A stretch of 63,968 nucleotides of DNA, counting the filler, from Choristocarpus tenellus KU-1152 (lineage: Eukaryota; Protista; Phaeophyceae): the NCBI GenBank assembly GCA_964200185.2. It is 11 parts of 11 records of this genome, joined end to end, with 100 filler letters (N's around TTAATTAATTAA, not from the genome) between each part and the next. Parts side by side here need not be neighbours in the genome. Positions count along the whole stretch, not along the records: positions 9,784 to 27,785 come from CAXNAD020000592.1; 10 more parts are not named here. The stretch is one strand, 5' to 3'. Shown piece after piece: positions 9,784 through 27,939 of this stretch. The translations under genes and the position numbers were made by a program. Position 1 is the stretch's first letter, and every line of letters starts with the position of its first letter. The notes beneath the pieces were generated by a model that did no database searches, had not been told where the DNA came from, and worked only from the letters and a program-made list of their open reading frames with translations.

Positions 9784-10314
9784 GAACCTTAATCGGTACC
9801 ACGGTATAACGGTATATGGCATACGGCAATAACAGTATAATAACAGACAAACATGCTTTCCACATTGTTCTTATTATATACAGTGAAGTTGTAGCTTCTG
9901 CTTTTGGTCATGAGAGGATTGTTTTTGCAACAACCTTAGTCGTGTTAGCAATTTTTTTTCGGCATGTATTTTCTTATTGTGAACTATGTATCACTACAGG
10001 TCCCATCTCTACAACACATCACCTCTTCTAGTTGGACCTACAGAAATTTTGACCTCACCAAATCTGGTCCGTTTTTGCTTTTCAAACATTTTGCACCTTT
10101 TAGAGAATAATTATTAAGAGATAAATAATTACACCATACTTCGGTCGAGTTCAACTTGTTAATTTTACATGTTTCTATTGCATACATCGTTGGACCCTCA
10201 TTTCTCTTTGACGCTTGTCCTCAATAGACTGAAAGATTTCTTTCGTATCCTGGGTCGATGGCACCGTGACCCCCGTTCCCCTTGCAACATGTTACTGTCA
10301 TTCTCAACCCCCAG

Positions 10315-13300
10315 GTCTGTGGACAAAACACAGTTGTGGCGAAGGGTACTAATGTGCCGAAACAGAAAGTTGTGGAGGGTGCAACCGTGGTGGAGCATCG
10401 CTGTTGCTGCTCCTGTGGCATGTCCTACCACCCCAGTTGCCTCAGTAGTCATGGCGAAGCTGTGAAGTCTTCCCATCCCAATTGCTTGAGCCACACAGAG
10501 ATTTGCACACCACTAAAAGTCCACCCCAGTGATCCAGAATTCCGTTGTCCTCTCTGTGAGGCCCAGACCTATCTAAACGATGGCAATTGGGAAGGACTCC
10601 TTGGCCTAAAGAGCTTTCCATGTGTCACGCTGGAAACGGCCCCTTGCCAGTCGTACAGTTTTGCCAATAGGGGGGGGCTTCATAGACCGGCGGGTGAGGA
10701 CAAAGTAATGGAGGCCAGCTGGGATGTGGAGTCGTCCGTTCTTCCGCTCGTGCGATTGTTCGAGAACGTTCCAGGTGCGGCGGTTGCAGAAGAGATATAC
10801 TGAGGGGGAAGACTTGTGAAGGCAAGGAAAGGATCTGGACGGCATCTCGATGCGTGGGAGTGACTATGAGTGGGGAAATTGTGCTCTCGGTCTGTACTGT
10901 GTTCTTGTGTTGTGCTGTTATTGACCAATTTTTCCTTGCGCGGAAGAGAAGAGTGAGCAGCAAATCGCTCGAGCATGCACACATGCACGCACACATGCAC
11001 ACGTTCATTGTTCGGGTTTCCGAAGGAGAGGTTGCGTTCTCTTTAGTGGCATCGCAAAAGACGGTGACTTGTGCGTAGAGTTGGGAGAGGCGTAATGCAA
11101 TGGGGTGATGGCGTCGATTCCTTCAACACGTTCACGTGCTTCGGTGCACCTTGTTGGCTGTCGTGCTGAGCTACAGATGTATACTATTGATTGTTCACCT
11201 TCAGGTTTGATCTCTAGGCGACAGGCTTCGTGCGGTGGACCGATGGGAAGGATGTTGGGCCGTCATATTATTGAGGGATATAACACCCGCACGTGAGAGG
11301 AGGGGGGGGGATCGGGTGGGTGCAGTAAGATGGAAGGGCTGGGCAAGGATCAAACTTGGAGTTCGTCGAAATGCTTTTCCCAACACGTTGACGCGCGGGT
11401 GTGTTGAACAGTACTCCTCGGGCAAAGTTCTGAATGTCTAACTTGTGTAAATATTGGTATGAATTGTGTTTTATTGTATTGTCAACTTCCTGTAGTTAGT
11501 CTGAGAGACTCATACATACACATATATGTGTGTGTATATATTAGGGCATGCCAGCTGTCAATCCTCCTCTTGTCAAGCTGTTAATGGATCTTGTAGATGC
11601 TTGAGTTCTCTCCTGAGTTATTCGCACTCCTGACACGGTAGATAGAAAGTGTGCGTGTAACAATGAATGTTGGGGAGGTTCCATCATCCTCCACCAACTT
11701 TCGTACATTGAGTTTCAGGGGTGCAGATGCAAGGGATTGGGGTGCAGGATAGTGTTCTTCATTGTAAATGGAGAACCGTGAGTGATCACCTGTCTTGACC
11801 TTTTTCTGGAGTCGACAATATCAATTGCTACCTCTTCTCCTCACAGGGTTGCTCACTCTCCCTCATCTGACCACAGGTTGATTCTTAAGTTCCACCGGCT
11901 TGGGCTCCCCTCAAAGAGGAGTCGTGTGATACAGATTGCCTTCCGCAGCTTTCTGACCATGCCAGATCCTGTTACTGTAGCGCCTGCCCCTCCTGGGTGA
12001 GTGCAAGTACCTGAGATTGTGGCAATTGCTGTCTACCTGTTGCTTCACCCAACGACCCCCCTTCCTCTACTATGGGAACCTCCGAAACCGCTTAGAAGAT
12101 GTTTCCTAGCAAGCAGCCTTGCATTCAGGTTCTTCATCACAGGGTAGTTCTTCCTTCCTCTAACCAGATGCTCTTATAGCGTGTGCAGGTACGTACCCTC
12201 AGGCTTATCCTAATTTGGTTCCATTGTGTGACCATTCACTAGTCACAGGAGTAGACATTGCTCAGTAAGTTCAGCGATAAGGACTGAACTGATTTGTTGA
12301 ATCTGCTACCAACAAATGGTGTGCTTCAAACCTGATCCAGAGCCAGATCTCTTCTTTAGAGCTTGGGTGTTGCTGTTGCATTCTAGGCTGCTCTATCAGT
12401 TTTCATATAATTATGTTGGCGCTGGTTTTTGCTTCGAGAGCACTCAGAGCATACAGCAAGTCTAACATACATCGTCCACTACTGTCTGTGAGAGCTGTGT
12501 TTGTCAATATGCAAGAATAGTGAGATTGCATTGTTTTTCAGTTTGGCTAGGACATTCACAGGTACAGGTGCCTTGGTAGTGGCTTGAGATATACCTGGCA
12601 GGAAGAATGTGCATGCTATGATGCAGTCGGTATTGAAACATAGGTTGCTCCACCAAGCAATAATTCAAAGTTCAGTATACTTGTGTTGTTATGCCTTTCT
12701 TGCCTCATGATGATGCCTGCACAGAGTGTTGCTATGCTGACACTCCACCACCTGATGTTACACATCTGTAGCATATGTAGTGTATGTACATATTAGCACA
12801 TCTGTTACCGTTTGCAGTTCACTTCACTGTTCCGGTGTGTTGAGTTGTACGTTTGAAAATTGGCACACAAGTCCAATCAGTCAATGACCGCCTTTGACCA
12901 TATTCTCTGACCTAGGTTTGCGAATTGGTTCATTTTCATAGATCTTAGATATGGGCGTTCTTTTGGTGGACATGAAGGTTGGACGTGTGTGTTCTGAGGG
13001 CTGCCTTGAGAGTGCAAAGTAAACACACAGCTTGCTCCCTTGGGTTGACTCTGCCTATTTAAGTACCGTAACACACCGAGATGTTGTGTTTTCATAGATA
13101 ATGTGTCCACATCCTTCCTCTACATGAAGCCTCTTCACGGAGCACGCTTAACTAAAATTCAGCACTTCTCAAGGCACCTTACCTCAAGCCACGACTCAAG
13201 AGTATTCCTTTCTCGGGTTTCAACACTTGTTGCCCCAAAATTAAATGTGGAATAGCCTGTAAGAAATGGGATGATCAACAGTTTCAACATGCCCAGGTCA

Positions 13301-15111
13301 TGGGCTGGCCCTTGCCCGTGGCTCAGACCCCAGGCCATGCTACCTTCCCAGACAAATGAAAACCCCTGATTTAAGAAAGATGTCCTAAATGGTGTGTCAA
13401 CAAGTGCTAAAAAATAAGAACTTATATGACAGAAGTATATTAGTAGCAGTGCCCTACAATGTGTCCTAACTTAGCCAGACGTACAAACCCCATTCTTTCT
13501 CAACTGAGGATGTGTCTAGAGACTTGGGAGGGGAATTAAAGAGGGGCAAAAACGTATCAGAATATTCTCATTTTGCACATTTGTTTTTTCTTCCAGTAAA
13601 ACTTGAAACTGTAGAGTGCCTGCAGAATTTCTGCATGGCGTTCATTGCATTCTTTTTATGTTAGCGTATTTGATTGTTGATATGTAATTCCTAGTTCTTT
13701 GCAAATATATATCTGAAAAGAACAAACTGAATTTCTTTGATTAACTTCGATATTTTTATTTGATGGAGCTTACCACAAGCCCGGCCCTCGAACTCTGAAT
13801 CATACGCTAACCTAATATTCTTGGTGGATTAGTGCACACGATTTGCAGTTTGTATTTTCCCCCTCTGCTACCTCAGTGTAGCAGTTTGGTTGAAGAAGTT
13901 GCACAATCTGAACCAACGATGTTTTTATAGACCGGGTGTGCTATTGTCAAATCATTTGTTATGGTTGAATAGGTTGCCGGCCATAACAATGACCTCTTCT
14001 TGCCCTCTTGGCATTCAACAAACACACAACTTAGGTTGTCGCTACATGGCGCCCTGTGTCCATCCCATCCATGTCTTTTTCTCCTGGCAGGTGTGATGGC
14101 AAAGGTCGGCATTGGGAATTCTGGACAAAACCCAATTCAGCGCGATGTTGGCGTTACTGCCCACAGACAGGCATAGCAGAAGAGGAATGCGATAATGCTG
14201 CGAAGGACGTTGCAAAGATGATCACAGAGTTCACTGTGGAAGATGCGATTGGAGATCTGGCATCTCTTCCCCCATCAACAGAAAAGACTGCACTTGAGAT
14301 CTCAGCGTGGTTGCGGGAGGACGACTCCTTGGCCCCACAGTCAGAGAGGGTGCAGCAAGGCACGGATGGTGGTTCCAGGTGTGTATCCTGTTGTGATGCC
14401 ATATATCTTTCAAGTGTCTTCAAGGTTGTAGTTTTTGAGGGTAAGTTCTATAGATGAGGAGAGTGAGGGGGTAAGAACATCGCAAGGAATAGTCACCGGG
14501 CCGGGTCATGGCTTGTTTCCCAAAATTATAGGCTCGATATTTTTTTTCCCCCTTTCCCCTTTGTATAGTCGTACTTGTCTTCATCCATGCTGTCTTCACA
14601 TACACCAGCCTCTACTGATCGGCCAACTCTCCACCCGTCCGATTTTTCCAGAGGTGTCAGCGTTCGAAAGCGAAGTGCATATGCAGCCAGCGCTCAAAAT
14701 CGCACAGGGGAGGCAAGTGCCAAGGTCTCCAACCATCAGCTCTTGAGTAGATGTGTTTCAACGACTGAGAAGAAATCCAGTGGTCAATTGCTCTGGGGTA
14801 ACAAGGCACGCACTGCTATATCCTCTTATTCTCCGAGGCACCCGGATGGTAAGCGCTTCTTGACTGTTCGAGAACTTGCTAGGACACAGGGGTTCTGTGA
14901 TTCGTCTGTATTTTCAGGTGGGGTAACATCACAAAAGAAGCAGGTGGCCAATGCCCTGCCTCCGGTGGTGGCAATGCGCCTTGGACAGGCGATTGGGAGG
15001 ACATTGGTTGGTGGGATGCACTGGCCGTTCCAGGCACGGTGTGGAGAAGATGATTTCATGGCAGTGGAGGAGGTAGAAGAAGTGAAGGAGGAAAAGGAGG
15101 AGGGGGAATAG
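10315..15111 (+). CDS. C5-cytosine DNA methyltransferase (DNMT1/CMT-like catalytic domain) with a PHD finger immediately before motif IV; exons 10315-10774, 11205-11292, 11877-11996, 14091-14378, 14652-15111; 5' exons off-contig
   Basis: Five GT-AG exons with matching phases give a stop-free 471-aa partial ORF: PHD ligands (VCGQ...CCSCGMSYHPSC...FRCPLC), motif IV APCQSYS, motif VI FENVPGL, IEGY (VII), motif VIII LGLPSKRSRVIQIA, TVEDAIGDL, motif IX HPDGKRFLTVRELARTQGF, motif X QVANALPP. Confidence 0.9.
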
Positions 15112-15964
15112 GCATGGAGGTCTAGTGTCTTTTGCGTGGATGAAGTAAGGAGGAGACAATGTGCTGCAATGTAATATGTACAGTGCAAGTTTCTGAGCAA
15201 AGTTTGTACTTCAAATTTCGTTGTACAATGTACAGAGTACTGGTACGAATGGTACCCTCAATTTTGTGTGCAATAGTTTACACTATTGTCACCTGCAGTA
15301 TATATGCCATAGAGCGATACACTGTGAGTACAAAACGAGATGGCAATGGTAATTTATATACCTTTTTCATGGCACTCCTTCGAAGATGTTGTTGTGTACC
15401 ACCTTACCTGAATTGCCAATGTTATTGTTGATTGGCTCTTGTGGTCGGAAGTTGATACGAGCTGGCAGTGGAGCCCAAGTTCAGGCTTGTGATGTGAGAA
15501 TGATAAGACTGCCTTGCACACCTGAGAACACAGGTCAAGTCAAGCCTGTCATCCGATGGAGTTCGGAGCCCTGTGCCCTTTTTTTTTTATCTTGTCACCC
15601 AGAGAGAGAGAGGTTTTTCTTGGTGGAATTTATTGGAGTATAATGGAGTATAGTGTTTCTGTATTATTCAGACTACTTGTTGAGACAGTGACTGTATTGT
15701 ACCCCTATCCACAAGTGATCCAATGATGGGGGGGGTAGTAAGCCAATCTTGTTTATAGATATCTATTTGCAATAGTTCAATTCTGCGATGTGTTGATTCG
15801 TTATTTGTAGTTCTGCACTACAAATATGGACAAGAGGATCATTTTTCTAGTTTATGTTGGAGGTATTTTTGACCTTGATGTTACAGACTACTGGCCTTGG
15901 CAGAAAGGTTGTATCTCCGTAGTGCAAAAATCTTATTATTTTCAACGGTTGCCAACGATGATGT

Positions 15965-16238
15965 GAGTCAAAGTAAACCAGAGGTACCCAGAGTTAGTTG
16001 TATTTAACGATGCTAGCCCAGCAAATATGTGCCAAATTCGACTTGTCACATGAATCCGTAGAGGACACTTTCCAAATTGGGTCATAAAATTTCGAATAGA
16101 TAAATCAACCCTCTTAAGCCAAACTTAGCACTTCATCCAAAGAAATATACTTCGAAATAGGTGGATTGCAAAAGAATGAAAGACTGACTTATAATGCAAA
16201 ACGGACAAAATCTGGGCACTTTTCACTTCCTTTGGCTA
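15965..16238. mobile_element. MITE-like family 3 (termini GAGTCAAAGTAAAC...TTTGGCTC); other copies 20382-20596 and 44120-44379 (inverted)
   Basis: Three dispersed similar 215-275 bp sequences share GAGGTACCCAG and imperfect terminal inverted repeats. Confidence 0.7.
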
Positions 16239-17502
16239 TATTGCATATATATATATATTTCTTGAAGGTACCATGAAGCTTGTGACACAGTTATAGCATG
16301 TGTTCTCATTTGAAGGAAGGATATATGTTGAGCTGGGTGGAACCCCCAAGATTAGTTGCAAAAGCGGCTTGATGCATGGTTCTGTTCTACAAGCTGTGTA
16401 GTTAGCTGTGTTTGTTATGGGGAAACCCTCTTTGCTGCTTCTTAATTTTGCAGGCATGAGTCGTGGCAGACATGTGTGTGTGTGTGAGGGATGGCAGCAA
16501 TGTAACCAAAGATAACAAGGCGTCAGTGATGAAGTGATCTTGTTTGACAAAGAGGAAGATGGATGTGAATTGAGTGGTTAGTTAATAGTGCATGTAAAAC
16601 TAGTCAAGTGTAGGAAAGAAGGTGTTGATGTCACCAACTTCAGGCTACTACCGCTCCATCAATGTAAGCGCTTCTTGCGTTGTGACTTTGATGGGAACTT
16701 TCGAAAATGGTGCTTTTGAAGGACTACTATAGGAGAGCTGTACGACTGAGTAAATATTTTTCCTAAAGTGGGAATATTTGGAGAGGTCACTTCTTGACGG
16801 ATTTCCGTAATCAGCAGAAATGTTTAATCAATGTTGAGGATAATCTAAGTTCAGACAAAGATTGTTCGGGAGTATTTGACCTCGCACTTTGTGTGCCATG
16901 CACACAGTGGTGGCACACCTCCACAACAAAATGACTATCCACCTGCTTCATAGCAAATATGTCAGGTGACGGCTGCCTTTATTAACCCTTGACTGCCCAC
17001 TAGTGAGTTTTTTTTATTGTCTTTATCTGATGTCCTTCGCCACTACATATCAAGATGTTGGAATATCTTGATGCACCCTGTCTCACACCAATGATGCTGT
17101 CGCAAAAATGATAGGCATTGCTGAGCAATTACGGCCTGGTGGCCCTGAGACTCACAGATTGCAGGCTTGAGGTTTATTCTTTGCTTTGGTGTATGGTGTT
17201 AGTGTGGATTGTTGGTGTGGACAGCACCATATGTGGATGCAACATCTGTACAGTGTTTTCCGCGTGGGAAGACGCTCCTAGTCTTTCCTTCACAGGAGTT
17301 GATGAGTGATGTAGAAGGCCATGAGAGTGGGAAAAGATCTATAGTGCATATCCCTCTAGTTGGCACCTTTTTGTGAAAGCAATAACCACAGTGTGTTTTG
17401 GATATTCTGCTCAGCTTTGGAAGAACAAACATACTGCATGAGGTACCTCAGGATTATCTTACAGCCACGCCCACACCCTGTTATGTAATATGTGCTCTGT
17501 AT

Positions 17503-17769
17503 GAGTGAAAGTATCTTAGAGGGTAGGAGTTTTGCCCTGTTTGTCCATTTGGGGCTTGGATTTGCGCGGGGTTTTTTATGACACTTTACCTACTCCAAAA
17601 TGATTTGGAGTAGGTAAAATGTGTATGTTATCAAATGGTGTGTCTGGAACAAGGATAATGATACTTCCTAACAAACATGATAGCCAAAATGATTATATCA
17701 AGCTTTCAACATTAGATTTTGGCCGCCAAACGGACACGGCTCTACCCTAACCCTAAGATACTTTGACTC
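17503..17769. mobile_element. MITE-like family 2 (TIR GAGTGAAAGTATCTTAG / CTAAGATACTTTGACTC); partial copies at contig ends 27886-27940, 35721-35798, 45388-45459
   Basis: Clear terminal inverted repeats, no ORF, and closely similar end sequences at three other loci. Confidence 0.8.
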
Positions 17770-19471
17770 TACGCAAACTCATCATCTGCTCGTTGTTCTT
17801 GTTGCACTCAAGAAAATATAAAAATATGAAACAATGGTACTGAAGACTTCAGCTCCTACTCTCAGTCCTCAACATGCTTGCGCTCACACCCACCCTGCAC
17901 AACAATTTGTTCCTGGTGGTTGTAGGCAAGCCTCATAGTATGGCATGGATGAAACAAATGTGCAGAATTATAATATCATACACTGTATCTCTGTATTTTT
18001 ATCTTGCTGACCAACTATGAGTCAACTGGCAAACATAATCAGCAGGTTAAAGGCAATAAAACGATTATTCATCTTCCCACAACAATAATTTACATTTGTT
18101 CTCTGGCAGTGTGTTGTACACCAAGGCAAAAACAGCAACGGCAATAAATGCTTCCTTTTTTGCACAATGGCGTCTATACATATGTATGTGTATGTGCTTG
18201 TTTGTAGTTCCTATTTTCTGAACTGGCGCTCGATCAAGGAGGGGGGATCTTTGCTAGAGACCGTGATTTTCGTCCAGTCAGCTGGTGCAAAGAGAACAAC
18301 CTGGTCAGGCTGTGAAGTTCAGCAGAAGAAGCATGTTCCACCACTCAAAGCAGGGAGTTCTGATTAATACCGGGCAAACCATCTCAATCTGAGTAGTCCC
18401 CTTCTTCCAGTGGTAAGTTCTGTCAAGTACCAAATCAGTATCTCTCTGTTAGTTACCCTTCAGGTATGATTGTTTGAGTTGATGATTGCCCTTGATTTTC
18501 TAGAACATGTAGCAACTTAGCACTTGCAGAATGATTAGGATGCTTCAAAATCATCTTTGCCCCAGCCTTCTTTGCCGCCTGGCGAAGTATTGAAATCAGA
18601 TGAGGTTTCCAAACCCAGTCCAGTCCATTATGCCGATGAGGGCATAAACATGAGGTAGACGGAGAATGAACGCATCAGAGGGAGACAGATTGATGATTTT
18701 CTTGTGTTAGAGATAATAAGACTATTGAAACATAATCTTTACAGAGGTCACAATGCCCTGGAGCTGATCTGTTCATACATCAATGGCAGCTTTTTCCCTT
18801 AGTTCACATAATGAAGTGCCCATTATAGATAAGAGCAACCTTCCGTCGATGTGTTTCTAAACCTTGTACAGTACAATGAAGTTGCGTTCATTGAATAGAA
18901 ATGTGATTTAAGAGATGACCCCTGTATGTTTTTACATTCCCACCACTGTGCTATGGGGATAGTATGTGCTACAGAAGAGGGCACATGGGCAATGAGATGT
19001 CATCCTGGTTCACAGATTTGTTTGAAGCAAGGACATTATTACATCAATCAGTGAGATAGCCTTGCATCAACAGGAAGTTTTCTGCTACTACCACTTTTAC
19101 ACAGGGGTATCACTCACAATCACAACACCCAACTTTGTGCATTTTCACCAACTCTTCACAAGCCTCAACCCTGAACAACTGGGTACCGTTTCCGATGCAG
19201 CCCCTGGCACATATTGTACAACACGTACAGTAATAGGTTTGACTCAGTACCACTTTGAATGAAGAAGGGGGGGGGGCGGTTCATTGCACTGAGTTCATTA
19301 CGTGAAATTAACTTTCAGACTAATATAGCTGTGGCACATTACAAAATTTGTTGACAATGACTGCGAAGACCGCAGGGGGCAAATGACTTACAGTTACAAA
19401 GAACAAGGAATCGAAGGACTGAATTGGTAGTACAATACCTATCAATACACAATAAATACAACAACAGTTAC

Positions 19472-21530
19472 CTGAAATGGAAAGCGCCCCCTTCTGTCTT
19501 TGATTTCTTGATCTGCCCCTAAGGAAATCAGGGCCGTCAACATCCCCTCATTGTTCTGGTCTGCTGCAATGTGTAGTGGTGTCCACCCATCCAGGTCCTG
19601 AAGAGAGAGGAAAAATAGGAGCAGAAGTTATTTCTCCACAGAGAAAAAAACAAATTAGGAGTACTGCACAATAATGTGCCTACTAAAATATCTCGTACCA
19701 CATTATTGGGGGTGAGAAAAGGGCCAAGGTCAGACAGGCCAGACTCTCGTGAATGAAAATGCATACACTGATGATGAGAGTTTGCTGTATAGTCTATCGC
19801 ACATTGATTGACGGACATGGCAAGGATACACATATAAAAACTTCAAAATACAAAAATTACAAATACACAAGGAAGGCTCATCTGAAGCAAGTCATGCTTC
19901 TTGTATCTACTTTATATTTTCCCATGCATGACAGTGGTGCTGCCACGATTTGAAGTTGTTTTCCTGACCCATGTTCGTTTTTTGCGAAGAGCAGTGCTCA
20001 TGGGTTTCCCACTCTTTCTCTGATCTTTGCTTTGTGATTCCTTTTACTTAACAGTTGATTTATCGTGCAGAGAACCCACCGTGCAATTGATGTTAGCACC
20101 CCTTTTCACCAGGAGTTCTGCAGCGTCAACCATACCCTGCAGAACTGCAGTGTGTAATGGAGTATACCCATCCTGTGAGAGGGGTGAAGACAAAATCGGT
20201 TTTCTCTTGGAACTGCTACTGAGGAGTGCGGGACATACATCTTGTCGTGAGGTAGAAGCAGAGATGGCAACAGAGAGGGTAGATGCTGTTCTGACACAGG
20301 GGAGGGTCAGGGATTGATGGGGATGGATCGACTCCCTCCGATGGACGGCTATATTTTACTTTTCTTGTTGAAGAAAGGACAGAGTCAAAGTAAACAAGAG
20401 GTACCCAGGGTTGCATTTTAGGGATGCTGCTAAGATGTTTGTATAAAATCCGACTCTTTGAAACAATAGAGAAATCAGTACTCTCATATCAATTTTGGCA
20501 CTTCAACGATAGAAACAAGGACCAATCGCAGAAGATGAAACAGTGGCTTAAAATGAAAACGGCCAAAAGCTGGGTAGCTCTCGTTTATTTTGGCTCACTG
20601 TAGGGTCTATGGTTCTTTCACATCTACGTACGGCCCCTCAGGTCAGCTGATTGCCTTGATTCTATCACAAGTAAATTCAATAGCATCATGAAAAGGAATG
20701 CCGTTGAGACAGCAAGGGCGTCAACACATTCCGATCGACAGAAACGTCCCTTGTAAGATGTTGGTAATACCTCACCATGGTTTTCGTTAAGGTCCTAGCA
20801 ATGATATTTCTCACCTTGTCGGCTAGGTCTATTACAGATCCTTCGTCAAGCAATATTTGTATCACCGGCAAGCTTCCAATGTAGGCAGCCCTGCGATGTT
20901 TTTCAGTCATCAATCAATTGGACAGCGCAAAGATCAGGCTGGAGTCTTCGTTTGAGAGCAATATGCTGAATGGGAAGGACATGCCAAAATGAGGTCAATC
21001 GCGCATTGTTTCGGAGCTTTTGGATGTGGCAGTAATTGACAGAAGCCGAGAGGATATGGTAAAAATCGGTTTTGCTCACCAATGCAGTGGAATGCTGTTA
21101 CTCCAATCGCTGGCTGCAATGTCCGCCTTCGCCTCAATGAGCATCCGTACCAAAGCCGTAAATCCCCTAAATGCTGCCCAGTGCAAGGGGGTACATCCGA
21201 TAGAGTCCTGTGCGTTAATGTCGACCCCTTCGGTAATCTGGGATTTGAGGAGCGTCTCGTCGTTCTCCTACGGTAGGAGGGGGGAGACTGTAATGTAAGT
21301 TGAATTGTGGTAATTCGGCTTGTTTAGGGAGTGCTGTCGACAGAGCCGACAGAGCTCTAGATATTCAAATAGAAAAGCTGAAATGACGAAAGGGAACCAT
21401 AGTCTGTTATCACCAATTAACTCGAGCCGGCTACATCCTGTTGGTTGTGTCTTTGGAATCTCTCTACCTTGACCGCTTCGTGCAAATATTCAAAGTCTTG
21501 TTCTCCCGACGGAAGGAACGGGGAGACCAT
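19472..21530 (-). CDS. Ankyrin-repeat protein; exons 21530-21468, 21267-21080, 20890-20815, 20172-20080, 19597-19472; 3' end unresolved
   Basis: Spliced product MVSPFLPSGEQDFEYLHEAVKENDE...GCTPLHWAAFRG...IPLHWAAYIG...GYTPLHTAVLQG...GWTPLHIAADQN; all junctions GT-AG and in phase. Confidence 0.9.
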
Positions 21531-22129
21531 CTTCCTCTGCACCTGCAAAATGGGCGACAGTAACGAAGTTTGATATGAGTCAACCTTAGTCCAGTTTTAG
21601 AAGATCAAGAACAGACGCGGGAAGGTGTTTAACCTTGGCCCTAATCACATGCCATCATCTACTTTTTTCTTTGATTTTCCTACCTTTTATCAACGTATGC
21701 TTCGCGTGAGAGACATGCCCAAAACGCTTCCACCAACTCCACCTTTGCAGCACAGATCTTCCTTCTTACATCAGTCCCATTCAGCCACTTTCTCGCTCCC
21801 GGATTATGTTTACCCTTGCAATCCTCAAAATTTCGAGATTCCCAACATACCTTCTTAGTCGAACAAGAAGAACGAAACCCCCGAAACGGCTTGTTGAAGG
21901 GAGAGGAGGGAGAGAAAATTAAACTTTTAACAACGGAAAAGATCTACCTTGTGCAAGTAATGAATCTACTATTGATAAGATTAACCTAAGTCAACGTATA
22001 CACAAAATAAACCTTACATATCATATATTGTGCTAAAGTTGTCAATGGACGTGTTGGACAATTGGATGTTTGTTCTACCCACTACACATATATTAGAGTA
22101 TTATTCCGACCTGGACAATTGACCACTGA

Positions 22130-22450
22130 CATGATGCACGTGGCGCGAGTCTTACTACAATCCAACGAGATAAGGAGGACCCTTTGTGTATGTGTTTCAT
22201 TGACCTGCAGAAGGCGTATGACTCTGTCAATCGAGATCTTTTATGGAAAGTAGTGACCAAATTTGGAGTGCTACCTACTAAGATTTTTGATCACTTGTCA
22301 ATTCAAGTCGGAAATCGGGCTTGTGTGCAGATGGACGATGGGGAACTCTCTGACTGATTCAATATTGAACAGGCCTCAATCAAGAGTTTGTTCTCGCCCC
22401 GATGCTATTTAATCTCTTCTTTACCATTGTGCTGGAGAGATTCGGCACCG
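22130..22450 (+). mobile_element. Degenerate non-LTR (LINE) reverse transcriptase fragment
   Basis: Encodes CFIDLQKAYDSVNRDLLWKVVTKFGV and a decayed L.P.LFN motif, with frameshifts. Confidence 0.8.
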
Positions 22451-23899
22451 AATAGAGTATGCATAGGGTACAGGAAGTATTTTTGTTGTGTCACGGTCTT
22501 GTTTCTGTGATGATTTTGTTGCAGACACAATAAGGAGATAGTACACTATTTTGTTCATCTTCTACAATCCACGTATCAAAGACCACCCTCTCCCTCGCAT
22601 CCCCCGGGATTTTCTAGACAAATTTGCTCGGCTCTTCCCCTCATTTATAATGCTGCAGGAGGTTACGGTGGTATTTCAATCCCACTCCTTGAAAAGAATT
22701 TCATGTGTGGAAGCAGGGAATAAAATATTACACTAACAAGTCAAACCATTCTATTCGCCATCCGTTGGGGGCGGCCCCATATATTTGTAGAATTTACATA
22801 TTATCCCATGTAGTAAGTACGTAGTATGTGTACGTCATCAGTGCAACACTGCCATGAGTTTGATACTAGTATTATATGCCAACAACACCAGTCAAGGTGA
22901 TAGTCAATATGTGATATGTTTGCATGTAAAATACATCACAACCGTGATGATATGCACAACTGGTCACATGATACCCTTCCACCTGTCGATTCACAGTAGG
23001 GGTGTTCACCATCAGGTTCCCAGTAGGCCCTATTGGACATACCAATGCCAGTAATCCGTCAAACTCAATTAAGGACCAATGTTTTACATACAAGCACCTC
23101 TCACATCATTATCTCCAAGGTGTTAAGCAGAAGGTATTATTCCCCGAAAGGGAACCTTACAATCTCTTTCATCCTTCTCACGTACATTCCGTGAAAGAAT
23201 AAGAAATTCTTCTCCGCCCATCAGTCTTTGTCTGTTCCTTGTTAGTGTCGGGTCTTGCCCTCGCGCATGGGCTCGTCCACGCGCTCACATGTGCATGTTT
23301 CTAAATTAAAAATCCTGAACAAGGATATAATACCTTACCAGCACGGGCTCTAAGCACCTACTTTTTTTTATCTTTCACGTACATACCATGTAGAAATGTA
23401 CAACAAAGTAATTCCTGTATGTCCATCCATCTGCTGTATGTCTATACATACCAATAACTCTACAGAGCTGTTTTTCGCTTCGCCGTTTGTTTGAAGTTTG
23501 AGTTCTATTTCTATTAAATATAATAGTACATATGGCAGAGTTCTTATGGTCAGATTTCAACGTACCACCTGGACATCAACGCAAGCCCCCTCGCGCGTAA
23601 CAAGGCAAGGAGTCGCACCATGCTCCCTCCTCTCCTCCCTCTCCGATATGTGCAACCCCTGAGGAGTCCTATTGTCCGTTTTCACTTCATAGGGAAGGCT
23701 GACTGGTCCCAGGTTCTGCACGAGTTTGGATTAGTATCTCGGCAAAGTGCATGCCATCTAGTAATGTTCTTCAAACCGCTAGTATAGTCACGTAGTTACC
23801 AGTCCCTGCCCTTAACTCTGCCACGGAGGTGTGTGTATTCCCGTTCATGAGTGATGGCACTGTTTGCATCTATCCATGATGTAGCTGTCCCCTCCTCCC

Positions 23900-25290
23900 T
23901 CGGCACCACCATCGAGGTCAGTTTGGTCAGTTCTAGAAGGATGTACAGCTCAGTGTCCTTCTCAGCCTCCTCCCGCTGATCTAACTATCTCTTGCAATCC
24001 TTGTGTGCATCTTGGACTCGAGTGCACTCCTTCTCCTCCTCTTCTTACTGTAAGGGCGCCTTCCTCAACCTCTTTCTCAAACATGTGCAACCGTACCCAC
24101 CCCTTGTGAAAAGGAGCTATCGCCATCGTGATCTTTGTACCTCATGGTGTACATGTAACATTCTCCCCACTTCCACGCAGAATGAACTGGATCCCTCACC
24201 ATAACTCGCTCTTAGATATGTTCCTATACCTGAGGTCTCCCAACAAGACAAAATGTGAAACGCAAAAGGCTTTACTTCAAATACAGTTGGAGTAACGTAT
24301 TATTATTTCTATTTCTGTAGATATTATGACCTTTGATGATTTGCAGATGTGTCGAGGGGAAAAACAGAGACTAAAACTGCATCACAAGAACTACTTTGGA
24401 ATAGATAATGTTTGTCGACGCAAAAATACCTCCCAAAAAATGTACTATTTGAAAACGACACAACAGTGTCACCATGGAGATGGATATCTGCAACTACTTT
24501 GTGGACACTACTACGCTTCCAGCCTAGCCCTACAAAGGTTGGCGAGGAGGTAGTGAAGCATCCCAACAATCTGTCAGGTCCCTTCTTGCCTACCTGTCCG
24601 GTGCATCTAGCTTGAAACGAATGATACATCTTGAAAGGGTCACTTGTGTGGTGATGAAAGATATCTGTCTAAAAAGAGACTTCGCTGGCCCTTTCCTATT
24701 GGAACCCCCAGCCCCTCTCCCCCCTCTTCTATATGGGTGACTAAACCATCCAGGAAACTCTCTGCTTGCTTACAAAGGCACCTAAACCTTTCCACTTTTA
24801 AGGTGTTGAGATTAAATCTACGAGGGTCAATTACCTTTTTTTCGAGTTACGTTATCAGTCTAGGGACTATCATAATCCCAACTTGAGGTCAGAGGCACTT
24901 CACACTTCTGCACGCGCATACGAAATACTGCGTTTGTTGTACTATCACAGTCATACTCCCTCCGTCCATACCTGGCTTCCCACATCATATATGTTAGGTT
25001 CAGCCACCCCTTCGCTCATCTCTCTATTTCCTCCCTCTCATGTTGTGCTGGGCCCACCTTGTCAATGAAATCTTGTCACCTCGTACTTGGTTTTGCTGTA
25101 CGATATATAGCGGCAGATACGATACTAGATCCACCTGTACCAATAGACCCGTTGATCTTGCTCTGTGGACTAAGAATAAACCAGAGTTTGATGAACACAA
25201 GTCTGGCATTGATGGGGTTCGAACAAGTAAAATACATGCCAGGAATAGGCAGACCCTTCAACTGATGACCAGTCAACTCGCTCAAAAATA
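23900..25290 (-). mobile_element. Highly degenerate LTR (Gypsy-like) gag/RNase H/integrase remnants
   Basis: Fragmentary minus-strand peptides (FERVDW..., NQVRGDKISLTRW resembling the N..AD.LSRW end of RNase H) with many stops. Confidence 0.3.
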
Positions 25291-26760
25291 ATAGTAATAA
25301 GTATCAGCCTCCATTTACTCGTGTGGTGCTTTCAGCCATCCTTCCTGTTGGTCAGCTCTCGAAACTTGTGCTGAACCACCCCCACCTCAGTGTCTCCATT
25401 TAATATCACAGTTGTGCTGCTGTGGATATCCAAGTCAGGACAAAGTAAAACGATTGCTGATTTGAGGGATGGGGAATGCACCACAACAGGTTCGCCAACA
25501 CACTCTGTACCCTAGATATGCGCAATGTGACAAAATTGCCAATCTATAAATTTGACCTCTGTCATCACCATTATCTGCTTCCCTATTCATGAACTCAACA
25601 CCAGATATGCATCACTCTTCTTCCCATTGAACAAGCGAATCTTCTTGTGGAAGAGATAATTGAAGTATCATTTTGAAATTGGCAAGTTGATGCAGTCTTG
25701 GGTATGCGCTTTTTTTGTAACATAAAATACCAAATAGCAAATTATTGTAGTAGAAACAATATTATACTGCTTGTACAAATATTGCACATACGAGGTGATA
25801 GTGGTTGTCTTCCTCTGAACAATGAGCATAGATCAACACAACAGCTTGCATGCGCTCCTTCCTGATACGACAAATGTACTACTCAAGCAAATAGTATTGA
25901 AGTACCCTCCTGCAATGAGAGGCGATCCGTCTGATGTGCCTACTCATCTTGGAAGTATGCACTTCTTACATATTGCAGCTTCACAACTTCATGCACAATA
26001 TGTAATAACTATGAGCATTACATCATACTCTGTAAAAAAATGTGTTATTACTAAGCTCATCATATATGTGTGATTCTCCTACCCTTCTCCATTGAAGTCC
26101 TATTATTGTATAGTCATATTCAGTACCTCATGTTCAATATCTCATATTAAGCAGTTTTTCATAGCTTGCACACAACAACCTGTGCACTGTACTCACCGTT
26201 CCTCCAGCTCTATCCCCAACCTCACGCCCCCACTCCCACCTCCATTATCCTACCATTTATTTGTACCTATACTTGCTCCAGTCCGTACTCCCTAGACCAT
26301 CTTCCTCTCTCCTCTCCCTCGTAACTCTTCCAACTTCATCCCACTCCATTTCACCATTTCGATTATTTCCAGCACATTGCACCCACCAGTCGAGATCTCC
26401 GGTCAGTCAAGTCTTAGCAAAAAACCCAGAGCAATACCTCATTTCCTATCATTCCTTTCTTCCCCCTCAACACGAACCCCTCCAATACTCCACCCTCTAC
26501 TTGCCCTGTATTCCACAAAAAGGTTGTTGAACAGTCATTCCCTCCAACCTGTGTGAAGAAAGGGGAACATGAGAAGTACCAATTTACTCTACCTACCTCC
26601 TGCCACCCAAGCCCCTGTACTGCGTAAATCAACTCCTTTCCCTTCAAACTCAACGCAGTAACAACATGTTGGGCATATGAGGTGAGCCACTATGTGCTTA
26701 AGACTCTTCACACCCCATCCCCATCTCAAGTTCAAGGAAACCCACTGCAGGCACACTAGG

Positions 26761-27307
26761 TTAACCAGTGATCTCATGCAGAATCTCATTCGCGTAGCTC
26801 ATGTCCCCATCACCTACTACCACAACATCATACGCTTGTGCATATCGTGGGAGCTTCTCGAGCATGTGCTCATCCAACTTCAGGAACCCCACAGTGATTC
26901 GCCCCTCTAGGGATGGCAGACCTTAATAAGGTAAGAGGGGTAAGAAAGCATGTGTGTGTGTGTGTGTGTTTGCGCAAAGAGTCAGCAGTGCTCCTCTTAA
27001 GGCCCATGAAAAGAGAGTCTCTGAAGGAACTCGGTAGTTGTGTTTCTAAAATACTACCGTACAAGGACCACCACATGCGATCAAAAGCACAAATGAGTAC
27101 ATATATTAGAGTCTGAAAGCACACCTGGTGAAAAAAGAAGATGCAATACCCACCACGGGCTACCGCCCCCGCCTCCTAACACACAAAAAAGGCCATCTCC
27201 TACAGGAAGGACAGAAATCTCCCACTCCAAAGACTCCAATTGATCGAGAATATGTAAAAAGAGCATCTACAGAAAAAAAAATAATGGGAAGGATACTTCA
27301 AAACAGG

Positions 27308-27355
<48 letters not shown>

Positions 27356-27579
27356 TTTGTTACAATCAATAATGCATTACTCAGGAAGTACACGTCACCA
27401 TTTGTCAGGCCAAGGTCAGAGAGTTCAGAACCGAGAAGGACCACATTGGACCGTGAGGCGAAGGTTGGGTCCAGTCGAGCGCCACGCAAGAACTCCATTA
27501 GGGTTGTACCCGTCTTCTTCGCCTCGTGTACCAAGGGAACCGTGTCGAACATGCCGATGATCGTCATTGTATCATCAGG
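26761..27579 (-). CDS. Cytosolic pyrimidine 5'-nucleotidase (NT5C3/UMPH-1 family, HAD)-like, last two exons 27579-27399 and 26921-26761
   Basis: ...VPLVHEAKK...RSNVVLLGSELSDLGLTNG|LPSLEGRITVGFLKLDEHMLEKLPRYAQAYDVVVVGDGDMSYANEILHEITG* matches the NT5C3 C-terminal pattern. Confidence 0.75.
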
Positions 27580-27939
27580 CTGATAGCAATGACCAAACAC
27601 CCACAAACACCCACATATGCATGTGTGCATGTTGATACATATATATTTGCAATTGTACAACACAAAACACAGTCGTGGGAAGACACCATTTTGAAGCAGG
27701 GAGGGGGAGAGAGAGAGGTAGGGGGACAAGGTCAGGGTGGTAGGAGGGGATAGGTTGAGGCACAAGAAAGGGAGCAAGCAGGGGGNNNNNNNNNNNNNNN
27801 NNNNNNNNNNNNNNNNNNNNNNNNNNNNNTTAATTAATTAANNNNNNNNNNNNNNNNNNNNNNNNNNNNNNNNNNNNNNNNNNNNAAGCCCCAAATGGAC
27901 AAACAGGGCAAAACTCATACCCTCTAAGATACTTTCACT

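Follow-up and report, generated by a model that had tools for sequence, protein, structure and literature searches.

Does a DNA methyltransferase gene of the brown alga Choristocarpus tenellus KU-1152 carry a histone reader, a PHD finger, inside its catalytic domain? The gene lies in assembly GCA_964200185.2, in a window of 63,968 nucleotides made of 11 parts joined end to end, along which all positions are counted. We analyzed the piece of about 18 kb at positions 9784-27785 (CAXNAD020000592.1). To our knowledge, and in the literature that we searched, no histone reader other than the chromodomain of the chromomethylases (CMTs) sits within the catalytic domain of a C5-cytosine DNA methyltransferase (C5-MTase). 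If a second, unrelated reader occupied the interval between motifs I and IV, this would be a case of convergence, with the interval as a general point at which catalysis can be coupled to histone state. The sequence is best explained as a nuclear gene, divergent and interrupted by introns, that encodes a DNMT1/CMT-like C5-MTase and has its 5' part off the contig. We give a probability of a little over one in two to the reading that it encodes a complete enzyme whose internal PHD finger would bind the histone H3 tail and couple cytosine methylation to histone state.

Motifs and exons of the methyltransferase

The testable motifs on the contig identify the gene product as a C5-MTase, in agreement with the initial annotation made from the sequence by itself. 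Exon 5 matches the Pfam model DNA_methylase (PF00145) with an expect value (E) of 2e-8, and in the PDB it matches DNMT1/MET1-type enzymes best (E=4e-10), then ZMET2-type enzymes (E=3e-5), DIM-2-sized entries and HaeIII. We built a hidden Markov model (HMM) from 66 phage and prokaryotic C5-MTases, to which exons 1, 3, 4 and 5 align collinearly with the gene (Table 1). The frames of exons 5, 1, 3 and 4 are the four top-scoring of the 877 six-frame segments of the piece, and as segments they cover model positions 271-367, 98-143, 169-201 and 203-236, respectively. Individually, exons 1, 3 and 4 are weak against this model (E 0.01-0.14 over the piece), and they are assigned to the methyltransferase because of their order and spacing rather than their single scores. 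Exon 2 has no match of its own to the model and fills the length required at its place, as 47 residues separate ENV from the first motif VIII Arg, against a reference median of 44.

The catalytic Cys, the Glu of ENV and both Arg residues of motif VIII (RxR) are intact, and motifs IV, VI and VIII are canonical in order and spacing. PCQ and ENV stand exactly at the coordinates first assigned to them. PCQ is followed by S-x-x-N-R, as in DNMT1 and CMT. Motifs VIII and IX are 195 residues apart, which makes a long target-recognition region of the DNMT1 type, and motifs IX and X are present 3' of it. At the beginning of the target-recognition region (14092-14190, plus strand), a Cys/His cluster (C, H, C, C, C) forms a possible additional zinc site.

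Four positions are atypical, namely GGP to ETA before PCQ, Gln to Ser in motif VIII, Pro to Cys in motif IX and GNAV to ANAL in motif X. The unusual cofactor-pocket residues among them (ETA, the motif VIII Ser and ANAL) were absent from the initial annotation. At least 120 prokaryote genomes (L087-L206) have A-N-A for G-N-A in motif X, and in 62 of these the frame also contains motifs I, IV and VI; on these grounds we take it for a tolerated variant. ANALP is found 6 times among the matches listed. The motif IX change to Cys occurs once among the listed prokaryotic methyltransferase matches of the ANA type. Given several atypical residues in the cofactor pocket, a dead enzyme is possible.

The initial annotation had joined five exons in phase into one stop-free frame, and their borders confirm this. 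Each exon has an AG acceptor and the first four have a GT donor, the phases are compatible (1,2,2,2) with junction codons for G, T, G and R, and the joined frame, with splicing predicted from the sequence, counts 471 codons with no stop ahead of 15109-15111. No in-frame ATG stands ahead of the finger at the start of exon 1, and the frame is shut by a stop immediately 5' of it; the gene must thus have a further exon upstream. The contig edge lies 530 bases 5' of exon 1, and these bases look intronic; the GC content is 52-56% in exon 1 as against 38% in the upstream intron.

The exons were searched one by one, each as a separate query. Exon 1 had no match among 1.84 billion database representatives, nor in metagenomes, viral contigs and plasmids, and it retrieved no DNMT1 from the PDB even at E=10. 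Exon 5 had no match in viral contigs, and neither of the two matched the 90% database, which covers proteins of 84-268 residues and is hence silent on full-length kin. An exact look-up of seven variants of the open reading frame found none. Degenerate DNA patterns that combined the end of the finger with PCQ were rejected, having returned chance matches, three phage Cys inserts and, out of frame, an ordinary DNMT1-type gene with introns that looks fungal (L293, L317).

Table 1 Features of the methyltransferase gene, with positions in the window.
Feature	Position	Strand	Remarks
Upstream intron	9784-10314	+	cut by contig edge; 38% GC; no consensus-type donor; no HMM match
Exon 1, first on contig	10315-10774	+	finger, linker, motifs IV-VI; AG at 10313-10314, GT at 10775; HMM positions 98-141
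PHD-type C4HC3 finger	10315-10557	+	visible ligands C2, C31, C34, H39, C42, C78 and C81 of exon 1
Linker, 28 residues	10558-10641	+	may hold motif III Asp, helix and strand into motif IV
Motif IV, catalytic PCQ	10642-10650	+	preceded by atypical ETA, not GGP
Motif VI, ENV	10762-10770	+	40 residues past PCQ (reference 38-47)
Exon 2	11205-11292	+	helix and GY turn between motifs VI and VIII; in phase; supplies correct VI-VIII spacing
Exon 3	11877-11996	+	motif VIII at 11902-11925, both Arg retained, Gln to Ser; HMM positions 170-201; hhalign E=0.005
Exon 4	14091-14378	+	start of target-recognition region (TVEDAIGDL), Cys/His cluster; HMM positions 203-236
Exon 5	14652-15111	+	rest of target-recognition region, motif IX (14869-14901), motif X (14941-14964), acidic tail, stop; HMM positions 274-367

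The zinc finger and its place in the enzyme

The finger that opens exon 1 is probably of the PHD type with long loops. Seven of the eight C4HC3 ligands are visible, and the first Cys would end the missing upstream exon. The core reads C-x2-C-x4-H-x2-C, and a Phe two residues ahead of C78 gives aromatic-x-C-x2-C, while both loops are unusually long and hold four extra Cys/His residues. The C4HC3 spacing, a pattern picked after sight of the sequence, has no second occurrence in the piece, and shuffles that preserve composition reproduce it at a frequency of 1e-4 or less. The 22-residue core has 13 matches in the PDB, each of them weak (E 0.15-6), and all 13 are PHD fingers (DPF2, DPF3, KAT6A, KAT6B, MLL3). 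The finger proposed at the outset is thus upheld by its spacing and its core matches, with one ligand out of view. The profile searches suggested with it gave a mixed outcome, with exon 5 recognized by PF00145 and the finger falling under the Pfam cut-off for PHD; the long loops and the missing first Cys depress the profile score. In PHD fingers that read H3K4me3, a cage Trp stands two residues before the zinc His. The finger has Ser at this position and its nearest weak matches are of the DPF type, so unmodified H3 (unmethylated K4) or acylated H3 is a better guess for its predicted ligand than K4me3.

Where does the finger stand relative to the catalytic domain? The last zinc ligand and the Pro of PCQ are 28 residues apart, whereas motif I lies at least 60 residues (median 69) ahead of this Pro in 129 reference enzymes; motif I therefore cannot fit between the finger and PCQ. 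Either motifs I-II(-III) lie upstream, off the contig, and the finger is then inside the catalytic domain, or they have been lost. The motifs on the contig favor the upstream position, because all catalytic residues are kept despite a divergence beyond any relative among the 1.84 billion representatives. Such retention suggests selection on catalysis, a reaction that depends on S-adenosylmethionine (SAM) and hence on motif I. An Asp lies 21 residues ahead of the Pro of PCQ, within the reference spread of about 17-28, and could be a candidate motif III, in which case the finger would sit between motifs II and III, not between III and IV. The location of a PHD finger inside the catalytic domain, as first claimed, holds as far as its closeness to motif IV is concerned and is conditional on a complete enzyme; we rate a finger within a complete catalytic domain at about two in three.

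Short Cys-rich inserts (CxxC...CxC), which are not PHD fingers, are found between motifs III and IV of three phage C5-MTases (L220, 3874-4094, minus strand; L222, 1177-1400, plus strand; L250, 578-801, minus strand). They occupy the loop region that the CMT chromodomain also uses, and together with it they indicate that the I-IV interval accepts inserts. In the proposed mechanism, motifs I-II(-III) would be encoded upstream and the finger would be inserted into the half of the catalytic domain that binds the cofactor, within the I-IV interval where CMTs have their chromodomain. It would bind the H3 tail, with unmethylated K4 likelier than K4me3. This binding might dock the enzyme at nucleosomes or switch it on there, so that cytosine methylation would follow histone state. 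The enzyme would then be no chromomethylase but would have converged on the mode of action of one.

The DNA of the piece is CpG-depleted (CpG observed/expected 0.53, TpG/CpA 1.28) in exons and introns as well as between genes. This suggests a CG-methylating host genome, a signal notable for a brown alga.

Several observations weigh against a complete enzyme with an internal histone reader. Neither a motif scan nor the HMM found FxGxG or any match to motifs I-III on either strand of the 18-kb piece. The residue at -3 from PCQ is G or A in 129 of 129 references and that at -2 is G in 127 of 129, where the present gene has E and T, and the motif VIII Gln replaced here by Ser is invariant in all 85 matched references; both ETA and this Ser are unseen in every reference enzyme compared. 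The finger scores 9.9-11.3 bits with Pfam PHD (PF00628) against a cut-off of 24, and the RING model zf_RING_Vps8 (12.8-14.9 bits) stands slightly above both PHD and PHD_NSD (11.6-13.6 bits), all of them sub-threshold. Single-sequence AlphaFold models of the finger were of low confidence (predicted local distance difference test 38-41), and Foldseek returned nothing for them. The exon-by-exon database searches retrieved no eukaryotic homologue for any exon. The piece has no strong CHG depletion, and its CpG depletion can be explained by an ordinary DNMT1 elsewhere in the genome and does not implicate the present gene.

Part of this evidence would also suit a truncated chimera or pseudoenzyme, in which a PHD-bearing N-terminus replaced motifs I-III and left a SAM-blind chromatin- or DNA-binding helper like DNMT3L, or else a recently decaying duplicate. 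No motif I within 18 kb, no retrieved relatives, and changes grouped around the cofactor pocket (GGP to ETA, GNAV to ANAL) together with that of the motif VIII Gln are what such a gene would display. However, the contig stops within an intron 530 bases upstream, the 471 codons run without stop or frameshift, and PCQ, ENV and RxR, the residues lost by known pseudo-methyltransferases, are all retained with canonical spacing. We therefore consider the loss of motifs I-III unlikely. Even with a complete and active methyltransferase, the internal zinc finger could be structural or bind DNA or protein in a RING-like manner instead of reading histones. The higher score of zf_RING_Vps8 (14.9 bits versus 11.3 for PHD and 13.6 for PHD_NSD, all below cut-off), the long loops with their extra Cys/His and the phage inserts described above as a precedent speak for such a finger, which we hold to be distinctly improbable, as both spacings of the ligands are of the PHD type, the position of the RING-H2 His is occupied by Met, and all 13 core matches in the PDB are histone-binding PHD fingers.

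Two further explanations concern the ends of the gene. An in-frame CAG at 10565-10567 with a comparable pyrimidine tract might be the true acceptor, near 10567, and the finger sequence would then be intronic or belong to another isoform. Since the finger is in frame, stop-free and exon-like in GC (52% versus 38%), and its ligand spacing is very unlikely to arise by chance, an error of this kind in the 5' gene model has very little probability. The enzyme might also be circularly permuted or split, as permuted C5-MTases exist (L003; plant DRM) and a possible donor is present at 15039, 3' of motif X; motifs I-III would then be joined 3' of motif X by alternative splicing or be supplied by another gene, and the PHD finger would be an ordinary N-terminal appendage. 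The initial annotation had seen no motif I after motif X, and indeed the 12.6 kb downstream hold no match to motifs I-III on either strand, while exon 5 continues to its stop beyond the acidic tail. This absence disfavors a permuted enzyme, to which we give scarcely any credit. The complete enzyme with an internal PHD finger remains our preferred reading.

Lineage and neighboring features

The piece is intron-rich eukaryotic DNA with a GC content of 44.3%; the Choristocarpus tenellus genome is reported with a GC content of 43.95%, an N50 of 6.8 kb and a mean intron of 627 bases, and of the other genomes tabulated there Heterosigma comes nearest in GC with 47.0% (10.1101/2024.02.19.579948). The same survey places Choristocarpus in the Discosporangiales and finds that only Discosporangium and two outgroups have kept DNMT1; the brown-algal repertoire surveyed consists of DNMT2 and the rarely retained DNMT1, and Choristocarpus is absent from its DNMT table (10.1101/2024.02.19.579948). 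Given its early brown-algal source, the present gene adds an unlisted methyltransferase to this lineage. If the preferred reading is true, it would offer a handle on chromatin silencing before brown algae lost DNA methylation. That the gene encodes an active, independently evolved, histone-guided methyltransferase with an internal PHD finger at the site of the CMT chromodomain, in the earliest-diverging brown algae and thus on the last branch before DNMT1 and most methylation were lost, is a tentative proposal to which we assign somewhat less than even odds.

Around the methyltransferase gene there is no Rfam match and there are no transposon-end repeats. A multi-exon ankyrin-repeat gene (about 19440-21270, minus strand; Pfam Ank near 21079-21267, 20047-20199 and 19475-19627) is convergent with it. 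At about 22130-22440 (plus strand) lies a decayed reverse transcriptase fragment of a long interspersed nuclear element (LINE) of the RTE type, with stops and frameshifts, which has 54-73% identical relatives on short metagenome contigs of ENA. It may resemble brown-algal RTE elements, a likeness that we give as a lead only. An excess of CpG transitions was not found in this LINE remnant (13/57 versus 32/148 in the first comparison), which is too diverged. A coding-looking exon of about 70 residues at 27370-27588 (minus strand), beside a long GT microsatellite, has no Pfam or NCBIfam match. Two 31-base copies of a small dispersed repeat, 94% identical, are found at 15965-15995 and 20382-20412.

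Comparison with known systems

The ADD domain of DNMT3A, DNMT3B and DNMT3L is a PHD-like reader of the H3 tail located outside and N-terminal to the catalytic domain. These proteins would be a plausible functional analogue if the present finger reads unmethylated H3K4. They differ in this external position of the reader, whereas the present enzyme has its finger beside motif IV and a long target-recognition region of the DNMT1 type.

Canonical DNMT1/MET1 enzymes, which include those of Discosporangium, Schizocladia and Chrysoparadoxa (10.1101/2024.02.19.579948), provide the top PDB match of exon 5. However, they have no finger beside motif IV, and strong conservation from motif IV to VI would be expected of them. 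A conserved DNMT1 orthologue is unlikely, because exon 1 has no detectable match to solved DNMT1s or to the database representatives.

The initial annotation had cautioned that PHD-bearing DNMT1-like proteins may already be catalogued in ochrophytes, and this is so for two raphidophytes, Heterosigma akashiwo (CAMPEP_0200282572) and Chattonella subsalsa (CAMPEP_0187160654) (PMC9998398). They share with the present gene an ochrophyte DNMT domain combined with a PHD finger, without clear placement in DNMT1 or DNMT4. In the Chattonella protein the PHD finger is annotated at 182-227 and Pfam DNA_methylase at 807-864 and 930-1254 (PMC9998398 Supplementary Data 4), so that by domain coordinates, the sole basis of this comparison, its annotated PHD finger lies some 580 residues N-terminal to the catalytic domain. 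The gap of 65 residues in its DNA_methylase match (865-929) is unannotated and near the present insertion site; it was set aside as support because ordinary DNMT1s show similar gaps of 45-65 residues. No report of a PHD finger inside the catalytic domain of a C5-MTase was found in the open-access literature, of which the coverage was incomplete. That ochrophytes combine PHD with DNMT is thus already known, and what would be new in the present gene is the likely internal placement.

The plant chromomethylases (CMT2/CMT3 and maize ZMET2) and the haptophyte CMT-like proteins are alike in having a DNMT1-like catalytic domain with a reader module between motifs I and IV, where the CMT chromodomain is located (PMC3934875). 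In a CMT-like protein of E. huxleyi, PF00145 matches at 451-509 and again from 589, with the chromodomain at 544-583 in between. Judged from the part on the contig, the present enzyme is not a chromomethylase. Exon 1 has no chromodomain match in Pfam, and a zinc finger fills the part in view. The DNA around the gene lacks strong CHG depletion, and the insert of the chromomethylases is a chromodomain, whereas that of Choristocarpus appears to be a PHD-type zinc finger.

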